From positions 1,798,001-1,862,000 of the forward strand of contig JBLDXI010000024.1 of assembly GCA_047495785.1 (NCBI GenBank): 64,000 bases of DNA, in the 5' to 3' direction. The stretch comes from Lepidodermella squamata. Its lineage: Eukaryota; Animalia; Gastrotricha. The notes below the pieces were generated by a model, which did not search any database, had not been told where the DNA came from, and was given only the letters and a program-made list of their open reading frames with translations. The translations under genes were made by a program, and so were the position numbers. This document shows, in pieces, positions 11,287 to 46,277 of the stretch (the stretch's first letter is position 1; every line of letters begins with the position of its first letter).

Positions 11287-12570
11287 ATGGAAGAATCTCG
11301 CTCTGATTTGCCGTGTTGTGGCGGATGTTCTATTTCACCGAAATCGGTTGTCGAATGCGTTGAAAGTGCCATTTTGAAATTGGCCGATTTCAGCGACTCT
11401 GAAGTGAAGCTTACAGATATTCCTGACTTCGAAATTAGCACGGAGCTGATTCATGTTGTAAACGGCGCTTTCTGCTGCAATAACTACGTTTACGTCGGCC
11501 CTTTTAAAACTGCCGCACAGAAAACGGCATTTTACGAGGCGCTTCACCGCGAATTCGAACTGAAGAGCGAATCTCACTCTAATTTCCTCATTGAAGATGC
11601 TATTTTGCTATTCGAAGCCGCTCAAAAACGAAATTCGAGATTATTATCCCGAATTCTTGGCAAACCGTCCTTGCCGATTTGCAGCCTTCAAAGTTGTTTA
11701 TTGCAGGCGATTTGGAACTATTTTGACGAAGGGGTCGAATTATTGCTAAAACGTGGCGCCTCACCTGCAATTAACATGATGAGAGGCTACGCTGATACTC
11801 GACCGGTTCGTACGGTGATTCAAAATTTCGTCTTTTTGTATTCACAACGGAATCGAGCTAACAATGAGCAATTTCGCGAAAAATCAGCTAGTTTAACGAG
11901 GAGCTTAAAGCTTCTATTGAATCATGACAGCGGCTGCCTATTTTTACCGAATTCGGATGGGAATGACGATTTCAAGGCGCTGCAAGAGTTATATCGAGTT
12001 GCGACTTTCAGTCCTGAAGCTGTTGAAATGATGATTGAAAAGTCGAGTCCCTACTTCAAGTATGAACGAGATTTCGAATCTCCATTATCGTACGCCTTTC
12101 GAAATATTGGTCGAGACATCGAAAATAACCGTATTACGTTCAATATCGTCCGCGAAATTTTCAAACACGCAATATTGCCGTTGATTTTTGCTGGTATGAG
12201 GCAAAAACGAAACGAGGAATTTTGTGAGGATTTTTCGACGCAATACGGAGTTTTGTTTCGATTAGTCGGGGAGCAGTCGAGCGAATTATTCGGTGTGTTT
12301 CAAGAAATTGCGATTGAATCGCGAAGCTATCATTCGTTACCGCTTTTTGTCGAAAAACTTGTCTATGAAAATGAAGATGACTTCAATGCCGAGTTGACGT
12401 CTTTCCTGAGTCGATTTCCGAGGACGCTTGAAAACTCTGCGAGGCACGCGGTGCTAAGTTGTCTACCTTGCGGTCTGAAAAAGCGGCAAGAGGCTATTTC
12501 GAAACTGAATTTACCCACGTCTTTACAGAGTTATCTGAATTGCTCGGAATTCAGCATAATTTTTAACTGA
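11287..12570 (+). CDS. SOCS-box family copy 1 (subfamily A), intronless
   Basis: CCGGCSISP N-terminus, ankyrin-like VELLLKRGASP, C-terminal FPRTLENSARHAVL...ISKLNLPTSLQSYL. Confidence 0.8.
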   Translation: MEESRSDLPCCGGCSISPKSVVECVESAILKLADFSDSEVKLTDIPDFEISTELIHVVNGAFCCNNYVYVGPFKTAAQKTAFYEALHREFELKSESHSNFLIEDAILLFEAAQKRNSRLLSRILGKPSLPICSLQSCLLQAIWNYFDEGVELLLKRGASPAINMMRGYADTRPVRTVIQNFVFLYSQRNRANNEQFREKSASLTRSLKLLLNHDSGCLFLPNSDGNDDFKALQELYRVATFSPEAVEMMIEKSSPYFKYERDFESPLSYAFRNIGRDIENNRITFNIVREIFKHAILPLIFAGMRQKRNEEFCEDFSTQYGVLFRLVGEQSSELFGVFQEIAIESRSYHSLPLFVEKLVYENEDDFNAELTSFLSRFPRTLENSARHAVLSCLPCGLKKRQEAISKLNLPTSLQSYLNCSEFSIIFN

Positions 12571-12856
12571 TAGAATTCATTTTAGCCTGATATTCGCTTT
12601 TGTAATATAAGTGAAATTTATGTAATATTGATCCTTTCGAATACATATTTTTAATTATTCTGTACATGCTCAAACTCTGAATACTTTATTCCCATACTAA
12701 AATTGTTTTAGATTATCTTGAACATATTTTGCTATGTTCATAAAGTTTTAGTTTCTGCTTTTTTCAAGCTAGTAAGATTGCTCCTAAATAAAATGCTGTA
12801 AAGGCGTACTAAAATGTTACAAAATTCTACTTTATCTTTAGACTTTTCGCATTAAA

Positions 12857-14176
12857 ATGGAAGATATTTCTGAATCGCGTTGTTTCGCCAACTGCTCCAC
12901 GTCACCTAATCAACTTGTGGAAGCGATTGACTTAATTATGCGAGATTTTCTAGATCTTGCTGATTACGAAATCACGTTTCGAGATCGAATATTCGACGAG
13001 GAAGAACACGAGACTAACTGCATTTTGCAGGGATCACTATGCTCAGAAAACTACATATATGTTGGCGAATTTTCCGACTCGAATCAAGTTGGTGAGGTAC
13101 ACAAATTTATCCTGGGAAAATGTCGTGAGAAAAGCTTGAAAAGCCAAGAATTTATCATTGAAGATTCGATTTTACTGCATCAGGCTGCTGAAAATCTAGA
13201 TATGAATTCGTTAACTGATCTCATGAGGAAGAAGTCGATACCAAAATGTTGCATTCAAAGCTGTTTACTGGCATGCATTGCGTCGTTATTCGAGCCTGGC
13301 GTTGACCTTCTGCTGAAAAGTGGCGCTTCAGCTGTCATTAGTTTGAAAAAATTCGAGCCGAATACCCGGCCTATTAGACGCTGCATGGAACATTTTTATC
13401 CAGTTTTTAGCGGCGATGAAGCTGGAGTCGAGGAATTTGAGGCGAAACCACGCCAGGCTGTTCGAATATTACGACATTTACTGAGTCAGTCTGGTGACAG
13501 TTCTCCATTCCAACCAACTGACGACGAAAACGACGATTTTCAAGCGTTACGTGAAATTTATCAAATCGCTTATTACGATCACGAGGTTGCCGAATTAATG
13601 ATTGACAAAGCTGGTCCTTTTATAGCTAGTGAATCGCTTGAATTTAACACCCCGATCGGCTACGCTTTCCGCAATATTGGTCGAGATATTAAGGATGGGA
13701 ATAACGCGAGAGTCGATCGAATAATTAAAATTGTTGCCCATGGTGTTATTCCGTTGATTCGAGCGGGTTCGAGGCAAAAATCAAGCGAAGGATTTTCCGA
13801 ATATTTTAAACCTTACGGGTATTTAATTCGCTTTTTTAAGTTGAATTGCAAACATTTGATGTATTCGTTTCTCGATATCGTTATCGAATCTCGAAGTTTT
13901 AACGCTAAATCACTTGGCGTGAAAAGACATGTTATTGCTAATAGTGTCGATTTTAAGGAAGAGATGGCAATTTTCTTAAATCAATTGCCAGGCAGACTTG
14001 GGAATTTTGCCAGGCGTGCTGTTTTAAAACGACTTCCACTCGGCTTGAAAAATCGAGGTGACGCGATTTTGAAGCTGAATTTGCCACTGGAAATATCGAA
14101 GTTTTTGAACTTGGATGACTTTTCTGATGCGATAGCTTCAAAAATCGGTTGTCACCCCGAAGCTATCAGTTTTTGA
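12857..14176 (+). CDS. SOCS-box family copy 2 (A)
   Basis: 439 aa ORF collinear with copy 1; LPGRLGNFARRAVL...LNLPLEISKFL. Confidence 0.8.
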   Translation: MEDISESRCFANCSTSPNQLVEAIDLIMRDFLDLADYEITFRDRIFDEEEHETNCILQGSLCSENYIYVGEFSDSNQVGEVHKFILGKCREKSLKSQEFIIEDSILLHQAAENLDMNSLTDLMRKKSIPKCCIQSCLLACIASLFEPGVDLLLKSGASAVISLKKFEPNTRPIRRCMEHFYPVFSGDEAGVEEFEAKPRQAVRILRHLLSQSGDSSPFQPTDDENDDFQALREIYQIAYYDHEVAELMIDKAGPFIASESLEFNTPIGYAFRNIGRDIKDGNNARVDRIIKIVAHGVIPLIRAGSRQKSSEGFSEYFKPYGYLIRFFKLNCKHLMYSFLDIVIESRSFNAKSLGVKRHVIANSVDFKEEMAIFLNQLPGRLGNFARRAVLKRLPLGLKNRGDAILKLNLPLEISKFLNLDDFSDAIASKIGCHPEAISF

Positions 14177-14356
14177 ACTTCAATGAAATGCAATTTTAAG
14201 TTTTGTCTCCAAATAATTTTTATAAAATTGGCAACACGATAATGTTTAACTATAGCGTGAAGACTTGGAACGTATTAATTGACTTTTTCGCGTTTCGATC
14301 GGTTTATGTTTTTATGAACTTTCTACTGAAAACGTTGATACTAATTCTTATATATA

Positions 14357-15976
14357 TGTCGTATATAATGTGGATTTTTATCTAAAGTAGACATTAGATA
14401 ACTGCTCCCATCTAAAGTAGACATTACATATCTAAAGTATACTTTACATAGCTTATTATTATCTAATGTGGACATTACATATCTAATGTGTTCAAAAAAA
14501 CAGAAATAACAGAAAACATGATTTATTCGTTCGAAATCAATTTTTAGTCATGATTTTCACATTTCGAAGAGCCAGGGTGGCAACGGCTGTTGCACCGAAC
14601 TTCGCCTTTTAGACATATGCAGTTAGCGCCTCTTCCACTAGCAGTGCACGTCCCTTTGCAGTTACAATGGAGGTGTCCCTGGGTCCCAAACAAAAAGGCT
14701 TGACCATTTGCTGTTCTTAGCGATTTGAAGACCACGTCAGGCACCTCCTCAGGGGTCAAGACCCTCGCACTGCTAATTCGATAGCAGTTGGAGAAGTAAT
14801 GTCCTTCCAGCCGTCCTTTGCGAGTTCCTAGCGAGACGCTACCATCTTCGAATTGTTCAAGAACTACACAGACCAGACTTGGTAGATCACTCGGGCCTCG
14901 ATCGACTTTGTCAACTAGCAATGATACAGTGTCACCGACTTTGGCAATAGGCGCTAGCTTGGCTGCATGAGCTAGCATTTCTTCGGCACTTTTCTGTTGA
15001 CCAGTTGTAGCAGCATGATCAGCTTCGCTCCTCCGATTTTAGATTTCGTCGTTGTCAACTGGAACTGCGACTTCGTCATCTTCTTCCAGCAAAGGAGGCA
15101 GATCGGAGGGAGAGAGATCTTCCTCGCTCCAGACAGCCTTCTTCAGCTTGTCAGGCAGAATTTCAGCTGGACAACCGTTCCTGGGCGGGTACGCAAACAT
15201 AACCTCCTGCGGAGTTTTGTGTTCGAGATTGCGATGAGGTCGTGTATTCTTCTGATACTGAACGAATTGACACGCCAAAGGCCAGTTGTTGCTCTTGTTT
15301 TGCAACATCCAGGCTGAGATCATCGGCTTGATGTCTTCGTTGGCTCGTTCAACGCTACCCTGAGACTGGGGATGGCGAGCTCTTCCATTCACGATGATCA
15401 AACCAAGCCAGAGTTCCACCAGTTCGCGAATTATCTCATTAACGAACTCCCTCCCGTTATCGGAATGCAAAATCATCGGAAAGCCAACTACCGCCGCAGG
15501 TACGCCATACCATGTTCTGTCCACCGTGTCCAAGGTCGATGTGTGTTTTCGCGATAACTTCGAAGGCATCCTCGACAGTTCCAATGAACTGATTTTTGTC
15601 CGTCGGCCTCGCTTTCTTCTTGATTAGCCGATCTCGACCGCCAATTTCAATGACGGAGTACCTAGCTAGAAGGCGCCTTTGGTTGGTTGTCTTCGTCTCG
15701 GCCGCTTCGGCTTCCTTGACCGCCTCCATCAGAGCCATCAAGGTTTCTTCAGAGTGCCATAATGAGTTCGACTTTGTCACGCGCTGTGAAAACTCATCCA
15801 CAAAAGCGTTTTTAATTGTCGCCAGGTCGAATTGGTTTTCACCATCTAAAATGACATAAACCATGTAAAGTTAACTTTAGATATGTAATGTCTACTTTAG
15901 ATATGTAATGTCCACTTTAGATAGGTGTGGTCTATCTAATGTCTACTTTAGATAAAAATCCACATTATATACGACA
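14357..15976 (-). mobile_element. Defective Ginger-type (KRBA2/SCAND3-like integrase) DNA transposon
   Basis: TIR TGTCGTATATAATGTGGATTTTTATCTAAAGTAGACATTAGATA at both ends, TATA flanks, subterminal ~19-20 bp repeats; broken ORF with H..LGHGG, LHSDNGREF, RHPQSQGSVERAN and Cys-rich CNCKGTC...CNSRCH tail. Confidence 0.9.
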
Positions 15977-16029
15977 TATATACATTCGTTGTCGATTTAT
16001 ATAGGCGGATTATTTTATATTTCGTAATT

Positions 16030-18355: not shown

Positions 18356-19636
18356 ATGGACGACTCGGCATGTTTTCGAAATTGCGGAGCAACACCTGAG
18401 AAACTTCTCAAAGCTGCTGTCAAGTTGATAGCTGAAAATTCCGAATTCGAGAACATTTCAATTAACCTTCATTACAAAGTACCTCGAGATCTGACGCCTT
18501 CGTTTTACAGGATCATCGGCTCTATGTGTAAAGATCACTTCATCTTCGCTATAACATTCACCGACCAAAATCAAATTGAATCATTCGAAAAATACCTCAG
18601 CAGTAAATTCGCGTTGAAAAGCGAAGAAAACCACGAGTTTATCATCGAAGATACCGTTTTATTACACGAGGCTACAAAGAATAAGGACTTGAATTTATTG
18701 ACTAGAATTCTGTTAAAAAAATATATCCCGCTGTGTTGCCTACAAAAATGTCTCTTGAACTGCATCAACGTTTCATTCGAAGCCGGGGTGGAATTGCTAT
18801 TGAAAAATGGCGCTTCGCCCTCGATTAGTCTCAGGAGAAATTGCCCGGAAACTAGGCCTATCCGGTATTGTGTTGGCAGATTTTCGACTTCGACTCCAAT
18901 CGCTTTTCCTTATATTGTATACTTCAAGGATGACTCTCAGGTTTTGAACAATATTTTACGATTTTTATTTACCCAAGCTCATAAGAATTCATTTGCTCCC
19001 ACTTTGGATGGGGACGATGATTTCCAAGCATTGCAGAAAATTTACCTTGTAGCCTATTACAGCCGAGAAGTTGCTGAAGTAATGATTGAAATAGCAAGCC
19101 CTTACATGGGTAATTTCGAAACAAGTTCCTTGGAAAGCCCATTGTTTGTAGCTTTCTCGGAGATAAGTCGAGAAGTTGGTGCCGGGATGCGTGAGGGCTT
19201 TTTTCGTCCCGATCTGGTTATACAATTTTTTGTTAATGGCATAATTCCGCTCATACGAGCCGGATCGAGGCTGAAAAAGTCGGAGCCGATTTATACGAAT
19301 TTTCGACGAAAATACGCGCCTATTTTGAGGTTGATTAAAGAGCGCTGTAATGAATATTTGGAGATTTTCACTGAGATTATCATTGAATGTCGTAGTTATG
19401 AATCGCCCCCACTGAATGTCTGGGATTTTGTGGCTGAGAATTGTGACGAATTTGAGGATGAAATGGACGTTTTCGCGCCTAGATTTCCCAGATCACTTCA
19501 AAATTACGCGAGAAGATCGATTTTGAGTCGACTGCCTTATGGTTTGAAAAACAGAGGTGATGCTATTGCTGAGCTGAACCTGCCTACTGCTCTACAGGAT
19601 TATTTACGATTTCCCCAATTTGATCTGCTAAAGTGA
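18356..19636 (+). CDS. SOCS-box family copy 4 (A), recent paralogue of copy 3
   Basis: 426 aa, closely alignable with 16030-17307 including the 3' flank. Confidence 0.82.
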   Translation: MDDSACFRNCGATPEKLLKAAVKLIAENSEFENISINLHYKVPRDLTPSFYRIIGSMCKDHFIFAITFTDQNQIESFEKYLSSKFALKSEENHEFIIEDTVLLHEATKNKDLNLLTRILLKKYIPLCCLQKCLLNCINVSFEAGVELLLKNGASPSISLRRNCPETRPIRYCVGRFSTSTPIAFPYIVYFKDDSQVLNNILRFLFTQAHKNSFAPTLDGDDDFQALQKIYLVAYYSREVAEVMIEIASPYMGNFETSSLESPLFVAFSEISREVGAGMREGFFRPDLVIQFFVNGIIPLIRAGSRLKKSEPIYTNFRRKYAPILRLIKERCNEYLEIFTEIIIECRSYESPPLNVWDFVAENCDEFEDEMDVFAPRFPRSLQNYARRSILSRLPYGLKNRGDAIAELNLPTALQDYLRFPQFDLLK

Positions 19637-30080: not shown

Positions 30081-31532
30081 ATGGAAACGCAGCTGTTTTC
30101 GTGTTACGACGATCCTAATTTAGCGTGCCCGTTGGGCAAGTCGAATTTTTTCCCGCTCTTGAACGCAATTATCGATCCTCTGCTTCAAGATTCGATGCGA
30201 ATTCTACGAATCAACTCAGACCATTGGCGGATAACTCGATGGAATTCAATTTCAGACGAAGAATTCGAGCGAATTGCAGATGGTTACATCCATGTTGAAT
30301 TACTAGATAAACGGCTCCACAACGGCGGGTTCGATTTGGCTCTCGGATTCCGCGACAAAGCAGCTGATGCAATCTCGACAATTTTTCAGCAAATTTTCAA
30401 CAAAATCTCCGAATTCGAAAAAAATCGGCGAAAATATTTTAGCGAATTTTCACCAATCGATTTGATGCGGCTACAGTTTGCGATAAAACTGAAAAATGGT
30501 CAACAATTGCGATCAATTTTCGAAGAAATCGGCGAAAAATCGGTAAAAATCCCCAAATGCGTTCTTCAGTGTTTATTAATTCAATCGATTGAACTGCAAT
30601 TTGTTGACGGCGTTGCGATTTTACTCGAAAATGGCGCGTCTCCTGCTGAAAAATTCAAAAAGTTTGACCGGGAAGTTGCGACCGTCCCTTTGGCTCTATG
30701 CATAATGTTGTATCGAAGAAATATCGCGGCTGATATGTCGGTATTTGGATGCCAATCAAGTTTGTATTCGGTGTCAGAGCTCGACTCAATTTTGACAATT
30801 TTGATTGCGAAATCGAGGGACAAGTTTCTGCATGAATTGACTTGGACATTCGATTTGACCGGCCTGGCAATACTAAGCCCAGAAATGGCGAAAATACTGA
30901 TCGATATTGCATGCTCAAACTACGACAAATCGGGCCGGAAGATTTTGAGTGAAACCTTTTACGAAATTTGGTGCTGGCTACGGGATCCATCAACCCGGTT
31001 CGATTTACCGAAAACATCAGTGACTTTCGCGAAGATGTTTGAAAATCTCGTTATGCCCCTTATGCAAGCGGGCTTTCGTTTCCAAAATGGAATTTTCAGC
31101 GAAGATTTGAAGACTTTGGGCAATATTTTCGCGACCATGGTTCGTCATGGGTATCTTAAACGATTTTGGGGCGATAAATCGATATTTTCGGATTTGTTAC
31201 TCGAATCGGCTGGGCAATCTAGCGTGCCAAAACTTGTGAATGCTTGGCGGAATAACAGAATAATGGATGACTTGATTGACAATTTAGTCGACCGATTTCC
31301 GCGATCGCTTCAGGCTAATTGTCGAACTGTCATCTTAAGCCGGCTGCCTATTGGGCTAAAAGTGCGAGCTGAGGCGATAACTGCCCTCGGATTGCCGAAG
31401 TTGTTGGATGATTACCTGAATTTTAGTGACTTTCGGGTGTCACCTCATTCTCTTGTTGTAGATGACTGCTCAAATACATGTGATATTGGTGATTTAAATA
31501 CCGGTGATGATGATTTTTGGACATCTTTTTAA
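30081..31532 (+). CDS. SOCS-box family copy 6 (divergent)
   Basis: IPKCVLQCLL..GVAILLENGASPA, VMPLMQAGFR, FPRSLQANCRTVILSRLPIGLK..LGLPKLLDDYLNF. Confidence 0.8.
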   Translation: METQLFSCYDDPNLACPLGKSNFFPLLNAIIDPLLQDSMRILRINSDHWRITRWNSISDEEFERIADGYIHVELLDKRLHNGGFDLALGFRDKAADAISTIFQQIFNKISEFEKNRRKYFSEFSPIDLMRLQFAIKLKNGQQLRSIFEEIGEKSVKIPKCVLQCLLIQSIELQFVDGVAILLENGASPAEKFKKFDREVATVPLALCIMLYRRNIAADMSVFGCQSSLYSVSELDSILTILIAKSRDKFLHELTWTFDLTGLAILSPEMAKILIDIACSNYDKSGRKILSETFYEIWCWLRDPSTRFDLPKTSVTFAKMFENLVMPLMQAGFRFQNGIFSEDLKTLGNIFATMVRHGYLKRFWGDKSIFSDLLLESAGQSSVPKLVNAWRNNRIMDDLIDNLVDRFPRSLQANCRTVILSRLPIGLKVRAEAITALGLPKLLDDYLNFSDFRVSPHSLVVDDCSNTCDIGDLNTGDDDFWTSF

Positions 31533-31771
31533 AATAAATAATATTTACCTAGCAATATGATTTGTTTTATTTTAGGTTCCTCAAATTCGTTCTATCGACT
31601 AAAATTAGATGCAGTAATTCGAATATCTACTTTTCGCCTTGAGCATCGGGTCCAAGCGGAAATAGGAGCCGTAGAGCGTAGTTTCTCTAATTTTCCAAGT
31701 TTTATATCGAAAATTTTTGAGTTCTTGTTCAAATTCTTCGTTTTAGTTTTTAAAACTTGACATTTTCGAGA

Positions 31772-33061
31772 ATGTGATGTGGCACTGATAGGAAGAAGTG
31801 TCCGGTCCATTGCAACGACGCTCCTCTGGCTGCTCGCGAAATTGCTTCGAAATGCTTGGAAAAAGCATTATTCGCCCTCAACTGTGACTTCAGATATTGT
31901 ACCGACAAGAAAAAAGAATTCAACTCGTTCGAATTTCTACCAATACTGCACCTGGCACCTCATCCTGATTGCCTTCAAACCCGCCCTGATGTTGCTATCG
32001 ATCGAATCAGGGCGCAGTTTGTGCAAGAATGCATTGAAGTCTACAGAAATAGCCTGAAATTAGATGTTTTTCAACCTATTGATGGCTTGATAATATTCAA
32101 CGCTGGACTCATTTACGACGTTGAGGCCTTGAAGCTGGTTGCCGATAGGGTCAAGAATCTCCCGCCCTGCATTGGCGCTCATCTTGTTATGAAGCTATTT
32201 TCTGACTGTGATGATTTCGACGAAAATACAGTCGCGAATTGCTTCAAGTTGCTGCTTGAAATGGGTGCTATGAAAAATTGGCAGCCGGCTTGGCACCCGT
32301 TAACAGGGTCAATATCCCTATTTAAGCTGAAAGTCAATTTACAGCGATTAAAATGTCTTAAGGTCGATTAAAATGGCGATGTTGTTTTCTTATCTAAATA
32401 AGAATCCAGAGCCACAAAGTTTCAGGATGAGCCCAGGAAGCATGGAACTTTTGAACCTTGCTTATTACCTGCCTTACAATTTACGATTTGCCCGGAAATA
32501 GCAGGCGGTTTCATTGACCACGCTCTTATAGCGAATGGCTATGATTACAGAGCTTTTTCGGGAGATTTTGACTTTTTAATGTGCAGTCCGACTTTGAAAT
32601 TGGCCAGGTTTGGTAGATTTTCAGTCTTGCCGCTGATGAATGCTGGTTTTCGGCTAAATTATTGGGAAAACCAGGCGCATCGTATTGACACTTCTTATCG
32701 GATTCGGAAAAGAAAACATGCCGATTTGGCTTTGAAGATTGCCTATGCTGCCAGAAACTCTGTCGTGACGCTGAAATCGAGAACATATGAATTTGTTGGT
32801 GATGAGAAATGGCCAAGAAAATCGAATTTGCCCAAATTCGCTGCACAGTCTTTACCGGGTTCCTTGCAGTCATTTTGTCGGCACGTGATTTTGCGGACTC
32901 TGCCAATGGGTAGTTACCGAAGACGCGTTGCGATTGTTAGTCTCGGCCTGCCAAAGCCTTTGAACAATTTTCTGATGTTTAGCGATATTGAATCGCAAAT
33001 TGACTTGACTTACGATCTTGATGAACGAAAAATATTTAATTTATCCGGGTGCGTTCTATAA
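31772..33061 (+). pseudogene. SOCS-box family copy 7 (subfamily B), pseudogene
   Basis: ATG TGA (Trp codon 2 of the paralogue is a stop here), cgattaaaatg duplication and frameshift near 32345-32375; SOCS box LPGSLQSFCRHVIL retained. Confidence 0.8.
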
Positions 33062-33399
33062 AATTATTTGTAACACTCCGTATTTCTTTTATATTTTTAG
33101 ACCGTTAACTAATTAATTAGGTAATTAATTACGGAGCTGAGGAAAAACTTGAGCTCGCGATGAAATGAAGAGAATCTGACTCAATTCGATTTTTCGAACT
33201 TGGTTAAAAGGGTTGTATCGTTTGGATTTCTTCCAGCAGGGTCATAAAGTCGCCCCGAAATCGCCGCCAAGAAATCGTAAAGGCAACTTTTGTCGAAGGG
33301 TCTTTTGCTCGGCGACTTTCGTGTATTCAGGAATAACGTCGGAATTTTAATTAGTTTTGAAAATGGGAGAATGTTTTAGCCGTCTAGGAAAATTTGAGA

Positions 33400-35340
33400 C
33401 GTCGCTGCGGCTGTAAAGTTGAGAACAAGACAGTGATGAATTCACTTGCTCTTCTTAGCCCTCGGCGGCAGTCGACGCGTCGGACCTTTTAGTTTAAAAA
33501 GCAAGCGTCGTAGCCTTCACGGACGCAACCTTTCTCGAGATCTCGACGAAGGTCCAGACAAGCCGGAGCCAAATGATTAGCATGGCCACAGTATGAGCAA
33601 CTCTGGGCATGTTTGCAGTCTACGGATCGGTGTCCCTGTTGACACCACAGGCATCGTGGCGTGGTACGCTGACGCTTGCGCTACGGTGATTGCCGTTGTT
33701 GTTGCGGTCGGGAAACCCGGCGCCGCTGGCGCAACTAGTTGCTGACTCTTGAGGCTGCCGTTGCTGATAGGGCGGATGCTGGCCGGAGGCATTTGAAGCA
33801 CGGTCGCGGAGCTGTCGCTCTATGTTCGTAATTCGGGCGGCGATGCCGTCGAATGCTTTCTCCATGGCGGACTTGGCCGTCTTCACTTCTGAAATGGGGG
33901 AAACAATATTTTTTAATTTGCTCGATTCTTTGTACGCTGACAATGCCAGAGATACTTTGCAGTCAAACGTGGACTTAGCGGCTGTTGTGAGGGCTAGGCG
34001 GACTTTGTCGTCAGCTAGGCCTTCATGAAAGGTATTTATCAGAGTATCGACTTCTACGCCAAGGCGCGCTGCGAGTACGCGAAGGGCCGAAGCATATGCC
34101 TCGATCGACTCGCCTGCTTGCTGCGTCCTGGCGTACAAGTCCTTCATGGATGAGGATGAACTTCTTGGTTCGCGGAAAATTTGTACGAATTTGGTAATTG
34201 TCTGTGCGAAAGTTAGGGTATTTTTTCCTTAAAAATGTCTTCCGCATTTGTATCAAATTTGGAGTAGAAATAATCCTCAATGTTTGTGAGTGGTATTTGT
34301 AATAACTTGACGTTAGTCGTGAAACGGCGATAAAATGGTGGGAAAGGGGTCCCTGCCAAATAATAAATATCGTTACCTTTCATCGCAGCTCCAAGGGCTA
34401 CCACGATGCTTGGCGTTGGCTCTGGTGGCGGTGGTGGTGGTGCTGGGCGAGCTGCCGACGCCCAGTGAACGGCCATTGCTTCGAGTTCAGTTGCGGAATA
34501 CCGAAGCGCGGTGCCCGATAGCGCTTTGCTTCCGGCGGCGATTTGTTCGATGCCGTCGTCTTGAATCTAAGTCAGAACTGCGCCGAGAGCGGTTCCGCTG
34601 GCGTCGCAGTGAATGCGCTAGGGCAGAGCTGGATTTGGCAGGCCAGTTGGTTCTTGGAAGATTGCCTTGATGTTGTCGAAAGGGGCTTGGCACTCGTCGG
34701 TCTAGATGAAGGGAACACTTTCACTGGTGAGCCGGTAAAGTGGAGAGGCAGTTTCAGCAAACTTGAGCGTGCATTTTTTCAAGAAGTTGGCAAAGGCATG
34801 GAACGAGGTTAGCTGTTTCGAGGAACGAGGTTATAGGCGGTGGTTGCTCTCAGTTTAGCCGGGTCGGCTTCGATGCCGTACGGCGAAAAGATGTGGCCCT
34901 GAAACTTGAGCTTTATTTGGAAGAGCTCGGACTTCTCGAAGACCGGCTTGGCGAATGAGGCCTAGGAATTCGCGGATGTGGGCTATATGTTCCTCCACTG
35001 TTCTGTAGAAGATGTCGTCGTGAAAGACCACGCACCACTTCCATTGTCCAGGCTTGAGCACATGTGATGTTTCGTTTGATCAGTCATAGCTGTTCTATGG
35101 CAAGATTTAGTAGGCGTCTCTGTCGGGATCGGTCTTTTCCGATAAGTTGAGGTTAGCCAAGTTAGCCAAGTTGCCATCGCATTCGAGTACGTCGATCGTT
35201 TTACCTTGACGCCTTTGGGATTAAATGGGTAACGAGTTGAAGAGCACCAGCCCTCGATCGCTGAGGCGAGATAGGCCGTCGTCGATTCGTGATGCAGGCA
35301 CTTCGAGGACGAGCCGAGAGCTGGGTAATTGCCTAACAGA
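33400..35340 (-). mobile_element. Rearranged Gypsy/Ty3 LTR retrotransposon remnants (gag and RT fragments)
   Basis: gag motif RTQQAGESIEAYASALRVLA..FHEGL (33620-34147); RT-like WKWCVVFHDDI..VEEHIAHIREFLGLIRQAGL (34855-35061); boundaries approximate. Confidence 0.7.
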
Positions 35341-35472: not shown

Positions 35473-36690
35473 ATGTGGTGTGGTACTGACCGGAACAAGT
35501 GTCCGGTCCATTGCAACGACGCTTCTATGGCGGCTCGCGAAATTGCTTCGAAATGCATGGAAAAAGCATTAGTCGCCCTCAACTGTGACTTCAGATATTG
35601 TACCGACAAGAAAAAGGAATCCAACTCGTTCGAATTTCTACCAATACTGTACCTGGCACCTCATCCTGATTGCTTTCAAACCCGCCCTGATGTTGCTATC
35701 GATCGAATCAGGGCGCAGTTTGTGCAAGAATGCATTGAAGTCTACAGAAATAGCCTGAAATTCGATGATTTTCAAATTATTGATGGCTTGATAATTTTCA
35801 ACGCTGGACTCATTTACGACGTTGAGGCCTTGAAGCTGGTTGCCGATAGAGTCAAGAATCTCCCGCCCTGCATTGGCGCTCATCTTGTTATGAAGCTATT
35901 TTCTGACTGTGATGATTTCGACGAAAATACAGTCGCGAATTGCTTCAAGTTGCTGCTTAAAATGGGTGCTATGAATAACTGGCAACCGGCTCAGGACCCG
36001 ATAAGATTTAGGCGGAAAGACAATTTACCGCGATTTAAATGTCTCATGGCGACGTTATTTTCGCATCTTAACGAGAATCCCGGATCACCAATTTTCCGGT
36101 TGCGCGATGGTTCGAATCTTAACACAGATTATATCATACCTGATCTTGCGATGATCGACCCAGAAATTGCTGCTGGTTATATTGACCACGTTCTTTTACC
36201 GAATAAGAACGGTTGCAGCATCAATTGTAACCTTAACGCGGCGGTCTGTTGCTCCATGTCAAGATTTGTCGAGAATGTAAAATTTCTAATCCTACCTCTT
36301 TTACGAACTGGCTGCCGCTGGAATGACTGGGATGCATTCATGTCCACTATTGACATACATTTTCGAACTTATGGTGGAGAGCACGCAAAATTAGCATTTC
36401 GAATCGTATTTGAGGCCAGAGGTAATAGTGATAAGTCAGTTGAAACACTCAGGTCGACGAAATTAGTAATAGCTGACGATCCGACATTGCGCAAGTCCCA
36501 GTTAGCCGAGTTCGCTGCTCAGTCGTTACCGGTTTCGCTGCAGTCGTTTTGCCGGCACGTGATTCTGCGGGCTCTACCTTTAGGTAACTACCGACGACAG
36601 GCTGCGATTGCTAGTTTTGGCCTACCAAAGTGTTTGAATGATTTTCTGATGTTCAGTGATATTGAATCTGAAGTCGACTCAATGCGATGA
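35473..36690 (+). CDS. SOCS-box family copy 8 (B)
   Basis: MWCGTDRNKCPVHC..., ILPLLRTGCR, LPVSLQSFCRHVILRALPLG..FGLPKCLNDFLMF. Confidence 0.8.
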   Translation: MWCGTDRNKCPVHCNDASMAAREIASKCMEKALVALNCDFRYCTDKKKESNSFEFLPILYLAPHPDCFQTRPDVAIDRIRAQFVQECIEVYRNSLKFDDFQIIDGLIIFNAGLIYDVEALKLVADRVKNLPPCIGAHLVMKLFSDCDDFDENTVANCFKLLLKMGAMNNWQPAQDPIRFRRKDNLPRFKCLMATLFSHLNENPGSPIFRLRDGSNLNTDYIIPDLAMIDPEIAAGYIDHVLLPNKNGCSINCNLNAAVCCSMSRFVENVKFLILPLLRTGCRWNDWDAFMSTIDIHFRTYGGEHAKLAFRIVFEARGNSDKSVETLRSTKLVIADDPTLRKSQLAEFAAQSLPVSLQSFCRHVILRALPLGNYRRQAAIASFGLPKCLNDFLMFSDIESEVDSMR

Positions 36691-36848: not shown

Positions 36849-39800
36849 ATGAACGTCGATGGCGATTACAAGACCTGCGACGACTGCCATTTATCGCCTT
36901 TGACGCTGCTCGAACGTCTGCAGGCTGTTGTTGCCGGCCATAAAGAGTTCGCTGGAATCCGAATCTTCTTATCGGACAACTTCAACTCCGTGTTAACGTT
37001 GGACTACGAACCAGGCAGCGTGTTGAGCGGACTTCTATGTCAGGAGAGCATTTTCTTCTCCGGTCCTTTCTATAATGAAGATGAGAAGAAGTCGTTCGTA
37101 GATTCGGTTTTTAGCGAATTCAAAGCTAAAAGTGATCTAAATCCAGCTTTTATCATTGAAGATGCCATTCTACTACATCGCGCAATTAATCAGAATGAAT
37201 TAAGTGTTATTAAACAGATAATCAGCAAACAATCAACACCTAGCTGCTGCATTCAAGCGTGTCTTAATCGATGCATTGACCGGTACTCTGAGGATGCTGT
37301 CGAAATGTTGTTGCAGAACGGTGCCTCAGCCACGAAAAGCCTCCGGAAAGGCCACCCGTACACGAGGCCCATTCAAGTTTGCACGCGAAAATTTGTTGAG
37401 GTTTGTGAATTTCAAGTTAATTTCAACTTTTTCTCAAAATGTGACAAAATTGTCTCCCAACTTCTCTACACGATATCCGTCATTCTGAGGTATTCGTCGA
37501 ACAGTTTTCACCAATCGACTCGGGATATCATGGCCAACAACCCTATGTACTCATCTCGAAATGTGAACAAATTCGCCAAGGAACACTTTTCACCAGTGTC
37601 GGAAGTAGGCTTTCTATTCACCTAGGGATGAAGAAAATAATTGAAAAAAATCCGCTCGCTCGCCATTGTTTGTATTATTCAATTTTAAATTTATCATCAA
37701 TAAACTCAACACGTGTTTCAACTATCATCCTTTTATTATCCGTGCATAATTTTCAAAATTTCAAAATTCACCGAGCTGTCACCAAACCATGTCCGCTTTT
37801 TCGAGCTCCATTTCGGAATATACTGGAACATCGAGCCACTTTTGAGACCGGGCAGAACGGCGATTGTTTGACAACCAAGATTTTAGGTACTTCGCGGTAT
37901 GAAACTTGGTCAGTGGCGGACCATTGATTTTGAGGAACATCAGAGCTGGAATAATAATTTTTAGCACAATTGACTTTTCTAAAAATAAATTTCTACCATA
38001 CCTGCGACAGTTTTTGCCTCAAGATGATTTCTCTCAGGAGACCAAATTTGATTGAATACAGAAAACCCTCGCTCTGCCTCAGCGCTAGAAACCGCCACGG
38101 TAGATGATTTTTCTAGGATTTTAACCAGCTGGCCTGACAGAGCTTGCCCAAGTTTCGCTTTTCTGAAGTCGAGTACGGCCTGATGACAGTCGTCATCTGA
38201 TAGCTGAACGAGCTGGCCCAAAGCCAGCAACTCGCCGTGACGGAGCCGATCAACGCCGCTTTCAACTGGCCTTTGATCTGCAGGTAAACGACTAGCGTAT
38301 TTCAAAAGCTTGTCGCTCGTATCGAATCGTTGACTCAGCTTGTCGAGAAGCGAATCGATCAGCTTGCACTTTGATTTTTCAAAGGCGGCCTTGGCATCGG
38401 CACTGTTGTTTGAAATCGGAATATCCTTAAAAGTGCCATCATCTTGCTCTTGATCTAATAGCTTTTGCAGCGATTCGCCGGGTTTCGACTTGAAAGAGGT
38501 GATGATTAAACAAGCAGCATCGATAGCCGGCCATACGTTCATCGGCGAAGCCTCGACCGCTTGAAAGGCTTTTGATAATAACATCAGTTCACGTAGACAA
38601 TCGTGAACTAGGCAAAGCTCGGTCAGGGTGCTGAAACTCGTAATATTAGCTAAAATCTGCTTAATTTCGCCATCCTTTTCAGCATCTTTCTTGGCTTTTC
38701 TACCCGCCTTTGGTTTCTAGCAATCAAAGTAAACGTACAGCGCAGAAATGTTGTTTAACAGGGAAGATAACGCGTTGAATGACGAAAACGCCCAGCGAAC
38801 ATCAAAAAATTTGCCGATTGATTTGATGACTACCCCAAGTGGTTCTGCAACTTTCTTCAAATCGCGTAAACGCGTAAACACCTCGACGCACAGATTTTCA
38901 TCGAGCACATCGCCTATCGCCTAATTTTCATCCCGACATGCCTCGGAGGCTAGGATGGATCCCTACCATCCCTAGCGTACTTCCGACACTGCTTTTCACT
39001 TTGCAGCGGTAAATTCATTCTAAAATTATGGAACTTATCAGTCACGAGAAGTTAAAACATAAGGGGCTACAACCCTGGCGGTTACGCAATTCTGCTTAAC
39101 AGCCAGGGTTGCCTCTTTTATCGGCTCAAGAATAGCTCAACGAGGTTATTCATCTTGCTCCGTTCGATTAAGGTTGGGTCAAGCTCGGTTCCTTTCACCG
39201 ACTTCATTCCGTTTTCCAACACCTGTGCATCGACTTTCAACAAAACTTGAAAAGTCTCTTTGGCTATTCCAGCTTGGCCTTCGGAAGTTAAACATTTTTA
39301 TGTCGCCTTGCTTGAAAGTATCTTTGCAAAGTTCAGTCAGATTATGCACCGCTGCGGTGAAGGAGTCAATTGCACAAGTATTTACCCGAAGTTTTTTGCT
39401 GGTGTGATCCATTCATTGTGAGCTTTTAGTGAGCTTATAAGCTTACAGAGACTGGAAATTGGGCGTTTTCAGTAAGTTTGCTTGGTTGACGTTTTCAAAA
39501 TCAGGCAGGTCACTATCGCAGTGTCCTCAAACTCTTTGTCGAATACATATCCTCTTGCTAGGTGAGCCTCATCCGAAGTAAATCCGTAGACTACTCCAAG
39601 TAACACCACTTGTCACCTCGTGTGAAGTTTGCGCCGTTACCGTTATTATGCTCCTTGAGACGCTTCTCCGCTGAACGTTGTGTTTGTCCAATGTACGAAG
39701 CATACGGCTGCGTTTCTGATATCAGTTGGTAAACGATACCCCAGTCAACGATCGGCTCGATAGAATTTGTCACATAGAAGACTGGGTCGGTGATGTTGAC

Positions 39801-42800
39801 CTTAGGCTGCCGGACGGGGAGAATGTTGAGTTGAGCCAATCGAGACACGATGGCACGATCATACGAATTGTCTTTAGTCAAGATGGACTCGATAGCATTG
39901 ACCGTAGCTTGTAGACTCGATGTAACAAACCCGACCTGTAGTGATGAAGAGTTGGAAAGGAAGTTGGCCCAAATAAGATAACAGAACAGTAAATAACAAG
40001 CCCCTTGCTACTTCTCCTGTGGCAGTCTAATATTGAGATACGATAAGTGTGTACAAGAGTCGATCACGCAAGTATTTATTAAAGGTTTTTGCTGGTATGA
40101 TTTTCCGCCATTTCGCAGGAAACACTTTTTAGGACGTCGAATTGGACTACCTGTTTCACCAACAAGGCCATACGAATGGTCTGGCGTTACGTTCAATGAA
40201 GAAGCAGCCGTTGTCACTTCGGGAATGTTGAAGCATGCATTGACAAACTTTCGTGTTTTCGTTTAGCAGTGTCCTCAAACTCTTTATCGCGAAACTGCGA
40301 GTAGGGTGACTCATAAAGCAGCTTCAGGCAAAGGCGAGAACAAAGGTAGAACTATGACTGAATAGCCGGCTCCGATGGCACAAGCTTGAAAGGTCGCCGC
40401 GCAATCTCCGCAATCTCCATATAGCAAGGCATATTGCAAGGCCCACCCTTTTATTCTTACAACTCTTGCCATAGATTCAAGCTTTATGAAATGAAAAATG
40501 AAGAACTATTTGCTGGCATTTGCACGCCTAGAGGACCTTAGAATTTGCGACTCGGCCTTCGAGTTCCCGAGCGTAACAGGGTTTGACCGTTTTGCAATTG
40601 TCGATTTCGGCAATGGCATAACGTTAGGAACTGGAGTGCATGGAGTGCACCCTATGCAACATACTCTTGCCGATCTCTCACGTATTAAGGAGACGTCAAC
40701 AACCGTAGAAGCAAAAAGAAGCCAAGAATTAGCCCAGAATGCCGGGGGAACCCCCGTACTGTCGCCATTCGTGTCGTGGACATCTTTGTTTCTTTGTTTG
40801 TTTGTTTGTATGCACCAATGTGTGTGCGAGGCTTGACTACACGCCTACATAACGCAATGTGCATACCATGACTACCCTCCTACATCACTCCACAGCCAAA
40901 AAAGAAGTCATTCCAACCACTAGCCACTGGAACCTTAATACAGTAATAATGTATTACAGTTTTGCAGTTTTACAGTAGCAGAAGTGGTGCAGGACAGCTC
41001 GTTGAGAACCCATGTGTTTTACTGCAGCTTTTCTTGCCGCTTGTCGAATTTTTACGAAGTCTTACAAACGTTTGCCGTGAAAGCCTCGTAAAACTGCGGC
41101 AAAATTAGCATTAAATACGTGCGGGGCAGTAGCTCGTTCAAAAACCGTATGCTTCGATTCTCCGGAGTCAACGATTTCCACTTTCATTGCTCTGAGGCAA
41201 CCATGGCGTTGCCAGGAGACGTTTCTGCATCAAACTCGGTCCCAACCAATTAGGCTTTAACGGTGTTTTCCTCGACAGTCGTGGCCGAAATCAGACGCGT
41301 GGAAGTCGGCTTGTTGCGTTGCTGCTGCCGTTTCTGATGGTTGTCTCTCAGAGCAACGGAAGTCGAAATCGTTGACTCCGGAGAATCGAAGCATACGGTT
41401 TTTGAACGAGCTACTGCCCCGCACGTATTTAATGCTAATTTTGCCGCAGTTTTACGAGGCTTTCACGGCGAACGTTCACGGCAAACGTTTCTAAGACTTC
41501 GTAAAAATGTCTCCATCTCTAGTGGACGATCAACAAGTGTCCGAATCGATGTCTAAGTAGTCTTAGATCCGAGTCTAATGAATTGCAATTTTCCCATAGA
41601 CGAAAAGCAGGAATAGCTGAATCCTGTTTGTCAAGAAATCCCTTCAGGTCTCTGAAACTATTACGGAGCAACAACGAAAGCTGCGAATAGAGCTCTAGTT
41701 TATCAGCGTCTGAATCAAAGGAACGATAATCTGGAAGTCGAGGGCCGTAAATCTTAGCGACATGTATTTCTCGCCGCATTCTCAAATCAATTACGTCCTT
41801 GTAGATGTAAGAACTCAATGACATTTTTTGATACGCTCAAATCGACGAACGAATTCGGTCCGATAGGGCCCTGTATGGAGAAAAACGAGAGTGTATTATC
41901 GTTGACTCGTTGTATCGTCGACACACGGTTTGCGCACACGGTTTCTGAACGAGCTGCCCCGCGCAACTTCACTGCCTATGATCTCAACGAGGGTGTTGCG
42001 GCGACTTGAGCTCTTTTTCACCGCATATTTGCCGGCTATTACCGAGCATTTCCCGTGCTCTCATATAAAAACCAAATCTGCCGTGATTTTCATTTGTCGA
42101 TTTTACGATGTTGCTAAAAACACATTACTAGGTACTAGGTGATCGGAAGCATCTGATACTTTCCGTCTCGTCTTTCAGTCTGACAATGGGGCGAAAGTTT
42201 TATACTTGTTTTAGACGCCGCTGTTGGTTTGAGAAATAATGCTAGTTTTGGGCTGACTTCCATGCATCAAGTGCATCGACGAAGTCTCATTTTTGGACCC
42301 GGGACCGAAATACGGACCCTTCTCCTCTCGGCGACGGCGCCATAGTTGTCGACTCGTCAAGCTGCTTGTCGACTACAGCCTATTAACTATTAACGGAATT
42401 TACGGAAAGGTGTACAATGGGTTCCCCCGGCGCTACTGCAGCAGCTACGCTGCTGCTGTTGCCAATGATTAGAACGACAAAATGTTTAATTTGTCTTCGA
42501 AAATTTGTGAGAGGATGTCGAAAATTTATTGTTTATTCTCTTTTTAGTCGTTCCCGCACATGGCTCGCGGTCATTTTCTTCTCGATTTTGTCAGCTTGTT
42601 GCAAAGTTTGAGCAATATCATGAGGAAACTGCTTTCTCAGGCTGACGAGAACAACACTGGCTGTTCACCTTTCAAGCCGACGCCCGATTTCGATGACGAC
42701 TTTCGCGTCATTTACGACATTCACGTCATTGCCTTCTATGACGCCGAGTTGGCCCAACTTTTGATCGAAAAATGCAGTGCTTATTTTGCGATTCAGTCCG

Positions 42801-43297
42801 AATTGGACAGCCCGCTGTGTCATTTGCTGAAAGTTGTCGGTAACCGACAGGAAAACGATTTTATCCTCCGGACGATCACTATAATATTTGCGAACGCCGT
42901 TGTACCGCTAATTCGAGCTGGCTCAAGATTGAAACAAAGCGAAGCATTCTCCGACGGATTCTCGCTGAAATGCGGAAATCTGCTACATTTCATCTTGGAC
43001 CAAAGCCCAAAGCATGCAGACATCATCCTGGAATCTATTATCGAGTCTCGAAGCTATACTCCCGAAGGATTGAATGTTGCAAAGCTGATGGATGAAAATC
43101 TCGCTCATCATGATGCTGAGGTTTCCATGTTCCTGAAGAAGTTCCCCCGTCCGCTTCAGAAATTGGCAAGGGGCGCGATTTTAAGCCGGCTGCCGTATGG
43201 GGTGAAGAGGCGCCATGATGCCATTTCTACGTTGAATATACCACCATGTTTGATGGAGCATTTGATGTTTTGTGAGCTCGGCTCTTTACATGAATAA
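36849..43297 (+). CDS. SOCS-box family copy 9 (A), two exons 36849-37400 and 42548-43297 around a 5.15 kb phase-0 intron
   Basis: GAG|GTTTGT...TCTTTTTAG|TCG joins in frame to a 433 aa protein collinear with the intronless paralogues; SOCS box FPRPLQKLARGAIL..LNIPPCLMEHL. Confidence 0.7.
37594..38991 (-). mobile_element. Internally deleted hAT transposon
   Basis: TIR CAGTGTCGGAAGTA / TACTTCCGACACTG, 8 bp TSD CTTTTCAC; DVRWAFSS and hAT dimerisation motif VAVSSAEAERGFSVFNQIWSPERNHL. Confidence 0.92.
39540..39881 (-). pseudogene. GIY-YIG endonuclease fragment
   Basis: GIVYQLIS...SYIGQTQRSAEKRLKEHNNGNGANFTRGDKW, continuing out of frame as VVYGFTS. Confidence 0.65.
41049..41508. repeat. Inverted repeat, ~155-170 bp arms with ~130 bp spacer
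   Basis: 41049-41204 is near-identical to the reverse complement of 41337-41508. Confidence 0.85.
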
Positions 43298-43556: not shown

Positions 43557-44718
43557 ATGTGTAGGGACAATTGCATCGTTTTCGACGAATATTTTCAAGC
43601 AAGGCTCCGTATTATTGCAGCTAAATGTCGAGAAAAAGCGGAAAATGCTGCCCTGGTTGGATGGAGGCGAATCGTTGGCTGGAGGTGGTTGGTTAAATGG
43701 ATTTGTTGGAAAAAACGACCGGTTTCATACCGACGTGTTCATACCGACCGGTTTATTTATCTACCGGTGACAGATTTTTGGGCATCGCTGATGTACATTA
43801 ATGAAGCTAAACCCTCGAAAGAATTGCGTCAACGATTTATCAAAGTTTTAACTGAAAAATACTTTACCGTTGCGAGAAATTATGATGAGTTGTTTGAGGC
43901 TGGCACTTTGCTAGTATACAATGCAGGGCTCATTTTCGACGACGCGACGTTAGCCTTAGTCTCGGATAAACTAGCCGGATTTCTACCAGAATGTATGGGA
44001 GAAGTCTTGCTGGGCAAGATTTTCCGCGCGCCCTATGATGAGGACATTGAATGCCTATTATCATGCTTGAAATCGCTGTTGAAACTGGGAACTTTAAAAA
44101 GTTGGCTTCAACCATTCTTTCATCTTCGCGTGCATTTGGAAAATGAAGAAAAGTCAACTCGAGCCGGAAGACTGTCACAAGTTATGTTCGAACATCTGAA
44201 TTCGGACCCGCAGATTTCTTTGATTCTTCTTTCGTGGACTCCTACTTCTGTCCAACGAACAGACTCAGAATTAGTTAAAGAACGACTGCAGAACATGCAA
44301 AAATGGAGAACGTTGCTCCCTGGACATTTTCACTGGAAAGCACTCCTAATTCCCAAGCAGGAATTACGAATGTAAAATTTGCGCTACCGTTATCACAATC
44401 CCGTCATTCGAATGGATAACTCGCTGCAACAAGAACCATCAACATGTGAAAACATGGTTGGTAAGAATGGCTTTTCCAATCCGCTCGGAGCGACCCTCGG
44501 GAAGTGCAAAATTCAAGTTTGATATTAGTTCGGATTCTCCGATTATCAATCGAGCTTTGGCCGATTTCAGAGACTATTTGCCGGGCTCTGTGCAGTCATT
44601 TGCGGTCGATTCTGTCAGTTTTCCTCTTGGTTGCTCTACCATCAAGTCTCGCCGAATTTTAGCTCCCCTGCGATCTTCAATACATGAGAGAACAGCTGTA
44701 AAGCCGATTACCCCCTGA
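43557..44718 (+). pseudogene. SOCS-box family copy 10 (B), decayed
   Basis: LLVYNAGLIFD..LPECMG..LKSLLKLGTLKSW aligns with copy 8; broken 3' half; degenerate LPGSVQSFA. Confidence 0.65.
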
Positions 44719-45005
44719 AGCACACGTGAAGCCCAAGCGTCCCCAAATGTCCATCTCTTAGGCCATTATTTTATTGAGTAGATTACTTTTGGAAAGTTCG
44801 AGTTGAAATCGCGCAGTTCTCTCAATTAGGATCGCACATGCTACACCACGCAGTCATCTATCGAAATTCGAAATTTCCTTAAAATTTAATCTGCTGGTGG
44901 ATTTATAATGCATATATTTGATATAAGTATAAAAAATCGCCGAAATATTTATTCTCGAATTCGTCTGTTTCGATAATCTAGATTTTTTCTTTTTCCAATA
45001 ATAAA

Positions 45006-46277
45006 ATGGTGTGTTCCGATGGAAATGATAACTGCGCTGTTCACAATTCTGATTTCGAACGGGAAGCTCGCCGAATCGCATTCGAGTGTTTCGAGAAAGC
45101 ATCTAAGCAGCTAGATGTCAAGATGAAAATATACGAATATGAATACCGGGGAAGCAACATTTTCGAGTTTTTGCCAGATCGTTACTTTTCCGGACATGCT
45201 CCCTACGGCAGCCCACCTGAAGATTATCCAGTCGAATCAATCCGGAAACTGATGGTTGAAATGTTACTTCGTTTATTCAGCGGAGATCCGCATACTGATT
45301 GCTTAAAACCCGTCGATATTTTACTGAGTTTCAATTCCTTGTTAACCCATGATTCTGTAGCTTTTGGTACTGTTACACGCCAAATCTTTTACGAATTCCC
45401 GTCATGCATCAATACGGCGTTTCTCATGGCTCTTTTCAGGAATTCTGGTGACAATGGTGTGTCTACTCACGCGTGTCTCTGCAGCTTACTCGAGAAGGGT
45501 GTTCTGAAGAATTGGTCCCTAAGTTGGAACCCAATTACAGCTCTTCTCTCCTACATCAAATCTGGCATTAATGTGGCGTGGACCAAAGAAATGTTGAAAG
45601 CAGTTTTCGACAATCTTGACCGCACTTCTGTCGTACTCAAGTTTAGAGAAAAGGATTACGCTTCGATGTGGAGTGACTTCGAAAACGGAACTTATGTTGA
45701 TCAAAGAATTTCCGACGGTTTGGTTGATAACGTTTTGTTATCGCCCGGATGTGGACCGTTTGCGCTAAGCATCCCAATAAAGCGCATGATTGAGAGCAAA
45801 ATCCACGACAGCCAAGATTTTGTGAAATATGTGAAAAATGTCATGCTACCGTTGATCCGAGCTGGTTTCCGTATCAAGTACTGGGATTTCGCCATAATGG
45901 CTGACCGTCATACTATTCCGGCTGCTCCTAGTGCGGCTTGGAAACAACGCCAGTGTTTTGCTCGCCGGCTCATCTATGAAGCTCGAAGCAATGAGGAAAC
46001 ACCGGTTAAAAAGGGTTTGGCACAGTGCTTTCGCAAGGAAGCTCAATGGGATGCAGAAACGGCGGTATTTGCTGAGCACTTGCGAGAAATCGTCGAATTT
46101 GTTGAGAATCCACCGATAACGCTTCAATCGCTAGCTCGCAGGGTTATTCTGTCGACATTGCCTCTCGGATTGACTAAGAGAAGAAAAGCGATTGTTAGCT
46201 TTTATCTACCGCAATGTGTTGCCGATTACTTGAATTTTATCGATTACGAACTGGGCGTTGAATTGCTTTGCGTGTGA
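45006..46277 (+). CDS. SOCS-box family copy 11 (B, divergent)
   Basis: MVCSDGNDNCAVH.., VMLPLIRAGFR, PITLQSLARRVILSTLPLGL..FYLPQCVADYLNF. Confidence 0.8.
   Translation: MVCSDGNDNCAVHNSDFEREARRIAFECFEKASKQLDVKMKIYEYEYRGSNIFEFLPDRYFSGHAPYGSPPEDYPVESIRKLMVEMLLRLFSGDPHTDCLKPVDILLSFNSLLTHDSVAFGTVTRQIFYEFPSCINTAFLMALFRNSGDNGVSTHACLCSLLEKGVLKNWSLSWNPITALLSYIKSGINVAWTKEMLKAVFDNLDRTSVVLKFREKDYASMWSDFENGTYVDQRISDGLVDNVLLSPGCGPFALSIPIKRMIESKIHDSQDFVKYVKNVMLPLIRAGFRIKYWDFAIMADRHTIPAAPSAAWKQRQCFARRLIYEARSNEETPVKKGLAQCFRKEAQWDAETAVFAEHLREIVEFVENPPITLQSLARRVILSTLPLGLTKRRKAIVSFYLPQCVADYLNFIDYELGVELLCV

Follow-up and report, generated by a model that had tools for sequence, protein, structure and literature searches.

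What kind of protein is encoded by a row of tandem, single-exon genes in the genome of the gastrotrich Lepidodermella squamata, and what might the amplification of these genes serve? The genes lie in a window of 64,000 nucleotides, which is the whole stretch analysed here (NCBI GenBank assembly GCA_047495785.1, contig JBLDXI010000024.1, positions 1,798,001 to 1,862,000 of the forward strand); coordinates below are those of the window. A first-pass annotation, made from the sequence alone, had described them as an array of SOCS-box proteins with nine intact and two broken genes, and as a candidate diversifying repertoire of Cullin-RING receptors. In our analysis the array genes are likely to be lineage-restricted, single-exon, ASB-like substrate receptors of an Elongin B/C-cullin RING ligase of the Cul5 or Cul2 type, where binding to Elongin B/C and to a cullin, ligase activity and any substrate are what we infer from the sequence.

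The list of open reading frames (ORFs) and a tblastn search with the family over the whole window placed twelve family segments, all on the plus strand, between 11170 and 46277, and none elsewhere. The co-oriented array of paralogues is thereby confirmed, running from the ATG of the first gene (g1) at 11287 to the stop of the last (g8) at 46277. The count had to be revised, since eight of the segments are intact, uninterrupted single-exon ORFs (g1 to g8, 405 to 483 amino acids as counted from the ATG adjoining the conserved N-terminus) and the other four are defective, namely two half-copies (f1 and f2) and two broken copies belonging to, or resembling, subfamily B (Table 1).

The tail of the array proteins reads as a true SOCS box, as had been proposed. 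Judged with Pfam PF07525 (SOCS_box; gathering cut-off 23.5 bits), it matches the model end to end (positions 1 to 39 of 39) in six of the eight intact copies (g1 and g3 to g7; 25.7 to 37 bits), and it also exceeds the cut-off in two defective pieces, the half-copy f2 (33.0 bits) and the broken copy at 31772-33061 (25.5 bits). When metagenome relatives are joined to the window copies in a set of 17 family members, 16 are matched. No Pfam family other than SOCS_box reached threshold in the array proteins. The tail follows the pattern [S/T/K/R]-L-x3-[A/C]-R-x2-[I/V]-L, then after about 15 residues L-[N/G/Y]-L-P-x2-[L/V/I]-x2-[Y/F]-L. Set against the BC-box consensus ([S/T/P]-L-x3-[C/S/A]-x3-[L/I/V]), all intact copies carry x-L-x3-[A/C]-R-x2-[I/V], with S or T at the first position in five of them and R or K there in g2 and in g5; of the Cul-box, all copies retain the second proline and Y/F-L. 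Seven positions (P378, L381, R386, P394, G396, R400 and P410) are invariant in all 17 sequences. A sequence profile run against the PDB aligned with the SOCS box of human ASB8, over the tail only and marginally (E 0.026). In language-model features, the Atlas clusters that lie nearest to g7, a subfamily B member, are those of ASB17 and of uncharacterised SOCS-box proteins.

For the body of the protein no described family had been recognised at first. This holds for the first 95 residues or so; the remainder is best described, on a predicted structure, as a degenerate ankyrin-repeat solenoid of ASB-like architecture. The AlphaFold2 model of g4, made from an eight-sequence alignment (mean pLDDT 78.4, pTM 0.81; unconfident at residues 1-10), consists of an alpha-beta3-alpha unit at 14-90, about six helical hairpins at 97-376 and three short SOCS-box helices at 381-418. 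The first two hairpins are recognisable ankyrin repeats, the others are degenerate and the later helices much longer; by eye, one clear and a second, weaker ankyrin-like motif can be found at g4 97-156. The whole model superposes on ASB9 and ASB8, both of which were solved bound to Elongin B/C, and the predicted ankyrin-type solenoid is packed against the SOCS box as it is in the ASB9-Elongin B/C complex. It is because of this superposition, together with the SOCS box itself and the conserved BC- and Cul-box positions, that a Cullin-RING substrate receptor is the best reading of these proteins.

The motifs that had been named from the sequence (N-terminal cysteines, an ankyrin-like motif, PLIRAG.R and the C-terminal box) are all present in the eight-sequence alignment, where C6 and C10, P125, C127, L148-L149 and G152 of the ankyrin-like motif, P298, G303 and R305 of PLIRAG.R and ten positions of the tail are invariant. 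Conservation is unevenly spread, and the contrast between a conserved tail and a divergent middle stands. The SOCS box has a mean pairwise identity of 0.55 and ankyrin repeats 1 and 2 one of 0.36, against 0.20 to 0.29 elsewhere, the most variable segments being the N-terminal domain (0.20) and the third repeat (0.22). No known relative was found for the N-terminal domain of about 95 residues, an alpha-beta3-alpha fold with a C-x3-C motif. As a side observation, C6, C10 and C127 of g4 (window 18371-18373, 18383-18385 and 18734-18736) are invariant or nearly so even in distant metagenome relatives, and the C-x3-C formed by C6 and C10 has a longer spacer in subfamily B; the three cysteines might bind a metal or be lipidated.

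The protein would thus have three parts: at the N-terminus some 95 residues folded as alpha-beta3-alpha, with the conserved C-x3-C at their head, then a solenoid of about six hairpins, and last the SOCS box. In the mechanism that we propose, the SOCS box would dock on Elongin C and a cullin, and the variable N-terminal domain and repeat surface would bind a substrate, which would then be ubiquitinated. Tandem duplication would have enlarged the cluster, joined now and then by a recent duplication or a gene conversion, as in g3/g4 and in g7 with the broken copy at 31772-33061; mutation and transposon insertion would have removed copies.

The family is narrowly distributed. A HMMER profile search of 1.84 billion protein representatives returned 49 proteins at E <= 0.001 (best 1.8e-49, all at 185 bits or less) and, at this threshold, no canonical ASB protein. 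Ten of the 49, among them seven of the eight best, were looked up, and all ten are unnamed proteins from ENA metagenome assemblies. A word-based protein search with g4 over 5.8 billion clusters gave no match, self included, in a collection that does not hold the proteins of this genome, and among 150 pattern matches of g4 in JGI metagenomes there was no relative. The metagenome relatives are 18-29% identical to g4 and show the same landmarks end to end; judged by their haspin kinase, RabGAP, saposin and NARF-like neighbours, their contigs come from an intron-poor animal, and on one of these contigs three or four members of the family lie in tandem. In a maximum-likelihood tree g1 to g5 form one clade (100/99) and g7 with g8 another (100/99), g6 stands alone and the metagenome sequences group in separate clades. 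The proposed division into two subfamilies therefore stands for the first two groups, while g6 is a separate, single lineage. None of the genes falls into the named ASB1-18 orthologous groups, and one-to-one orthology to known ASB genes was not found, as the profile hits contain no ASB.

A 25-kb metagenome contig (L004) allows the site of the array to be compared. It carries an 87%-identical homologue of the MPPB gene of the window, the best named matches of which (molluscs, annelids, hemichordates) are 70-72% identical, and it shares with window positions 1-10200 the gene order MARVEL, DUF498, MPPB, mitochondrial PheRS, F-box, E2-like. Beyond the E2-like gene L004 continues with trypsin genes, and no member of the array family is present on the contig. 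Because the syntenic contig is without the family, the array at this site would be specific to the lineage of the window genome, or lost from the relative; the few profile hits, the tree and this absence together support lineage specificity. Most genes from MARVEL to the E2-like gene are single long ORFs in both the window and L004, and both animals are therefore very intron-poor.

Most of the duplicates are read as ancient because dS between them is saturated, which makes their dN/dS unusable. Two pairs only are young, g3/g4 and g7 with the broken copy at 31772-33061. The former, 80% identical over 1442 nucleotides, is the only unsaturated pair of intact genes (dS 0.54, dN 0.15, dN/dS 0.28); in windows of 40 codons its dN/dS varies between 0.09 and 0.80, never exceeding 0.80, and the highest values (0.66-0.80) fall at g4 residues 161-220 and 241-280. 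What the paralogues share is the coding part plus about 150 nucleotides. Between strains, g5 shows 15 synonymous and 4 non-synonymous differences, and among the 20 best-supported single-base differences of g5 and g6 together 16 are synonymous and 4 non-synonymous; the listed insertions and deletions lie in the broken copy at 31772-33061 or in non-coding DNA, none in intact ORFs. Selection on the intact copies looks purifying, and the available signals (g3/g4, strain differences, saturated dS) lend no support to the diversifying repertoire of the first-pass annotation.

The broken copy at 31772-33061 carries three lesions: a TGA (31775-31777) where codon 2 should encode Trp, a 13-nucleotide insertion near 32359 and a 1-nucleotide deletion near 32478, the latter two putting about 106 nucleotides out of frame with two in-frame stops. 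Over its first 150 codons it is 93% identical in amino acids to g7 (dS 0.08) and its 3' half is far more diverged, so that the copy is a mosaic, left by a recent event of gene conversion or of unequal exchange with g7. Since public run X2 does not have the 13-nucleotide insertion, and X2 and a second run, X1, both carry one base more at 32478-32481, at least two of the three lesions are, to judge by these reads, private to the window genome or assembly errors.

The two runs, X1 (2015) and X2, were compared with the window as Logan contigs over the stretch 28300-34299, from which they differ by about 1-5%. X2 is DNA-like, with an even depth of about 90-140 over genes and spacers. X1 has a loose end in which the sequence of a SMART-type cDNA adaptor is found. 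Its contigs cover g5, g6 (about 30183-31370) and the broken copy at 31772-33061, and its depth is 0-3 in the spacers 29700-30100 and 31500-31700 as well as past 33100, where the transposon region lies. Transcription of g5 and g6 is probable, and the 3' half of the broken copy appears to be transcribed too, since one X1 contig is specific to it (8 mismatches in 583 nucleotides). For g5 and g6, the idea that the genes might be silent is not borne out by these cDNA-type contigs, which lie over genes and not over spacers. As a separate observation, a pyrimidine-rich run ending in AG is found 7-40 nucleotides 5' of the ATGs of g2, g4, g5, g6, g7 and f2 (in g2: ...tttatctttag); such runs would fit spliced-leader trans-splicing or an intron in the 5' untranslated region.

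Several points weigh against a ligase receptor. There is no SOCS_box match in g2, and g8 stays below threshold at 20.1 bits. In all copies N, G or Y stands where the Cul5-box L-P-x-P has its first proline, which makes the choice between Cul5 and Cul2, and even cullin binding, uncertain. Pfam Ank and Ank_2 are sub-threshold and weak, in two or three of the 17 members (best E 0.006-0.01), and the ankyrin assignment depends on a structure predicted from eight sequences. That X1 represents RNA is itself something we infer, and Logan contigs give no transcript ends, strand or level. The altered Cul-box and the failure of g2 and g8 to reach the Pfam cut-off also speak for a SOCS box that does not dock to a ligase, in which case the proteins would be ankyrin-type binders or decoys, sequestering their partners or Elongin B/C with no ubiquitination. 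This we regard as improbable: no other segment of the protein is as conserved as the tail, and the BC-box leucine with its Cys or Ala and the Cul-box L-P...Y-L are kept in every intact copy, as would be expected were docking the function that is shared and selected. It is more improbable still that mobile elements carried or generated the copies, or that these are selfish genes of a toxin-antidote type, with element activity accounting for their multiplication. Transposon remnants do lie within the array (14351-15982, 33620-34147 and 37979-38584), but terminal inverted repeats enclose none of the family copies, for which reason an origin as transposon cargo is unlikely; the sequence shared by paralogues has no element-like flanks, and the intact copies are under purifying selection.

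A receptor of this kind could belong to an immune or surveillance repertoire, its constant docking tail combined with a fast-diversifying surface directed at proteins of pathogens, viruses or transposons, by analogy with the F-box and MATH-BTB expansions of nematodes. Several observations would fit this: the birth and death of tandem copies, with four of twelve pieces defective, the recent mosaic that shares its 5' part with g7, the high variability of the N-terminal domain and middle repeats, the local rises of dN/dS in g3/g4, the absence of the array from the syntenic site of the relative and the clustering of paralogues by species. We nevertheless hold it to be unlikely, as the overall dN/dS is 0.28 with no window at 1, strain differences are mainly synonymous, the duplicates are mostly ancient and the large ASB and other SOCS-box families of vertebrates serve chiefly housekeeping, developmental and signalling roles. 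Slightly less likely again is a bolder version, in which this animal has many such arrays that together make up a very large, phylum-specific repertoire of SOCS-box receptors, possibly engaged in genetic conflict (recognition of viruses or transposons, or a selfish, toxin-antidote-like role). Were it true, the repertoire would parallel the F-box and MATH-BTB system of nematodes but would have arisen independently and on the basis of Elongin B/C-cullin ligases, and the N-terminal C-x3-C domain would be a new recognition or regulatory module. An ASB-like substrate receptor, with no particular role assigned to it, remains the reading that we prefer.

Table 1. Array members and inserted features, in order along the window.
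Feature	Description	Position	Strand	Remarks
g1	intact, subfamily A, 427 aa from ATG	11287..12570	+	SOCS_box 29.7 bits; in A clade with g5
g2	intact, subfamily A, 439 aa	12857..14176	+	degenerate SOCS box, BC-box R-L instead of S/T-L; no Pfam match; full-length alignment including tail
Element between g2 and g3	1.63 kb	14351-15982		perfect 50-nt terminal inverted repeats, internal sub-repeats
g3	intact, subfamily A, 425 aa	16030..17307	+	SOCS_box 35.1 bits; recent duplicate of g4
g4	intact, subfamily A, 426 aa	18356..19636	+	SOCS_box 37.0 bits; copy used for structure model
Homeobox gene	triplicated gene with multiple homeodomains	20396-28147		copies 77-79% identical in nucleotides
g5	intact, subfamily A, 438 aa	28386..29702	+	SOCS_box 27.0 bits; covered by cDNA-type contigs
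g6	intact, divergent, own lineage, 483 aa from ATG	30081..31532	+	SOCS_box 28.6 bits; single long branch in tree
Broken copy	subfamily B	31772..33061	+	three lesions; tail SOCS_box 25.5 bits
gag-like ORF	transposon remnant, about 33.6-34.1 kb	33620-34147
g7	intact, subfamily B, 405 aa from M-W-C start	35473..36690	+	SOCS_box 25.7 bits; ORF open upstream to 35413
f1	N-terminal half-copy, subfamily-A-related	36849..37625	+	aligns to g5 residues 6-263; family homology stops at about 37515
hAT-like ORF	within transposon-remnant region, about 37.6-42.5 kb	37979-38584
f2	C-terminal half-copy, subfamily-A-related, 245-aa ORF, own ATG, intact SOCS box	42560..43297	+	SOCS_box 33.0 bits; aligns to g5 residues 208-437
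Broken copy	subfamily-B-like	43557..44718	+	272-aa N-terminal ORF, frameshift, degenerate SOCS-like remnant 44578-44718; no Pfam match
g8	intact, subfamily B, 423 aa	45006..46277	+	SOCS_box 20.1 bits (below 23.5 cut-off); tail aligns with family

The array is not contiguous, being broken up by a homeobox gene in three copies and by transposon remnants. The element between g2 and g3 encloses an integrase/transposase-like ORF (15039-15584, minus strand) with no Pfam match, and no SOCS-box gene. The half-copies f1 and f2 were considered as the clean halves of a single gene split by a transposon, which is ruled out by the overlap of their family coordinates on g5; descent of both from one rearranged ancestor is possible. 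The ORF of f1 continues into unrelated sequence before it reaches a stop. The insert of about 5 kb that separates the two also harbours a near-perfect palindrome of 460 nucleotides (41048-41508), with 130-nucleotide arms that are 97% complementary and lie 150 nucleotides apart, surrounded by outer arms of 34 nucleotides.

Directly upstream of the array is the E2-like gene (9612-10160, plus strand; Pfam UQ_con, 117.8 bits), adjoined by the F-box gene (8877-9461). The E2-like gene reads H-P-N-I-S-L-H-G-D-I-G-[I/V]-D-L-F and so has a glycine at the position of the catalytic cysteine of E2 enzymes. As the same change is found in the syntenic E2-like gene of the metagenome relative (L004 6776-7270, minus strand), the gene is a conserved and probably inactive E2 variant.

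The published genome paper on L. squamata makes no mention of SOCS or ankyrin, and in the literature we found no report of such an expansion of SOCS-box proteins in an invertebrate. If the array genes are what we take them to be, the Elongin B/C-cullin arm would also show the adaptor expansions that have so far been described for F-box and BTB proteins. The array would moreover offer, in a barely studied phylum, expressed and constrained genes next to decaying ones for asking what such expansions do, and a new N-terminal domain whose role can be studied.

The nearest known systems are the ASB proteins (human ASB9, ASB8, ASB6 and ASB17), receptors of EloB/C-Cul5-Rbx2 ligases. The body of the array proteins has no sequence similarity to them, the PDB match being confined to the tail, and there are further differences: the array proteins add an alpha/beta domain at the N-terminus (about 95 residues, including the C-x3-C), have only two canonical-looking ankyrin hairpins followed by much longer helices, and lack the first proline of the Cul5-box L-P-x-P. 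Vertebrate SOCS-box receptors are modest, mostly one-to-one families, whereas the array genes are intronless, tandemly amplified and not one-to-one orthologues of vertebrate ASB genes. With the F-box and MATH-BTB families of nematodes and plants the array has in common lineage-specific tandem amplification, the union of a docking module with a variable binding domain and the presence of pseudogenes. It differs from these in its docking module, which is a SOCS box (Elongin B/C with Cul5 or Cul2), and in that positive selection, a hallmark of the nematode and plant expansions, was undetected in the dN/dS of g3/g4 and in the strain differences. The poxvirus ankyrin/PRANC and the Legionella ankyrin/F-box proteins likewise form multigene families in which ankyrin repeats are followed by a C-terminal cullin-docking box; there, however, the box is F-box-like (Skp1-Cul1) and the genes are borne by pathogens, while the array sits amid ordinary animal genes with conserved flanking synteny. 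What is new here is thus a highly divergent, amplified family of ankyrin and SOCS-box proteins with an extra N-terminal domain, and not a new kind of system.

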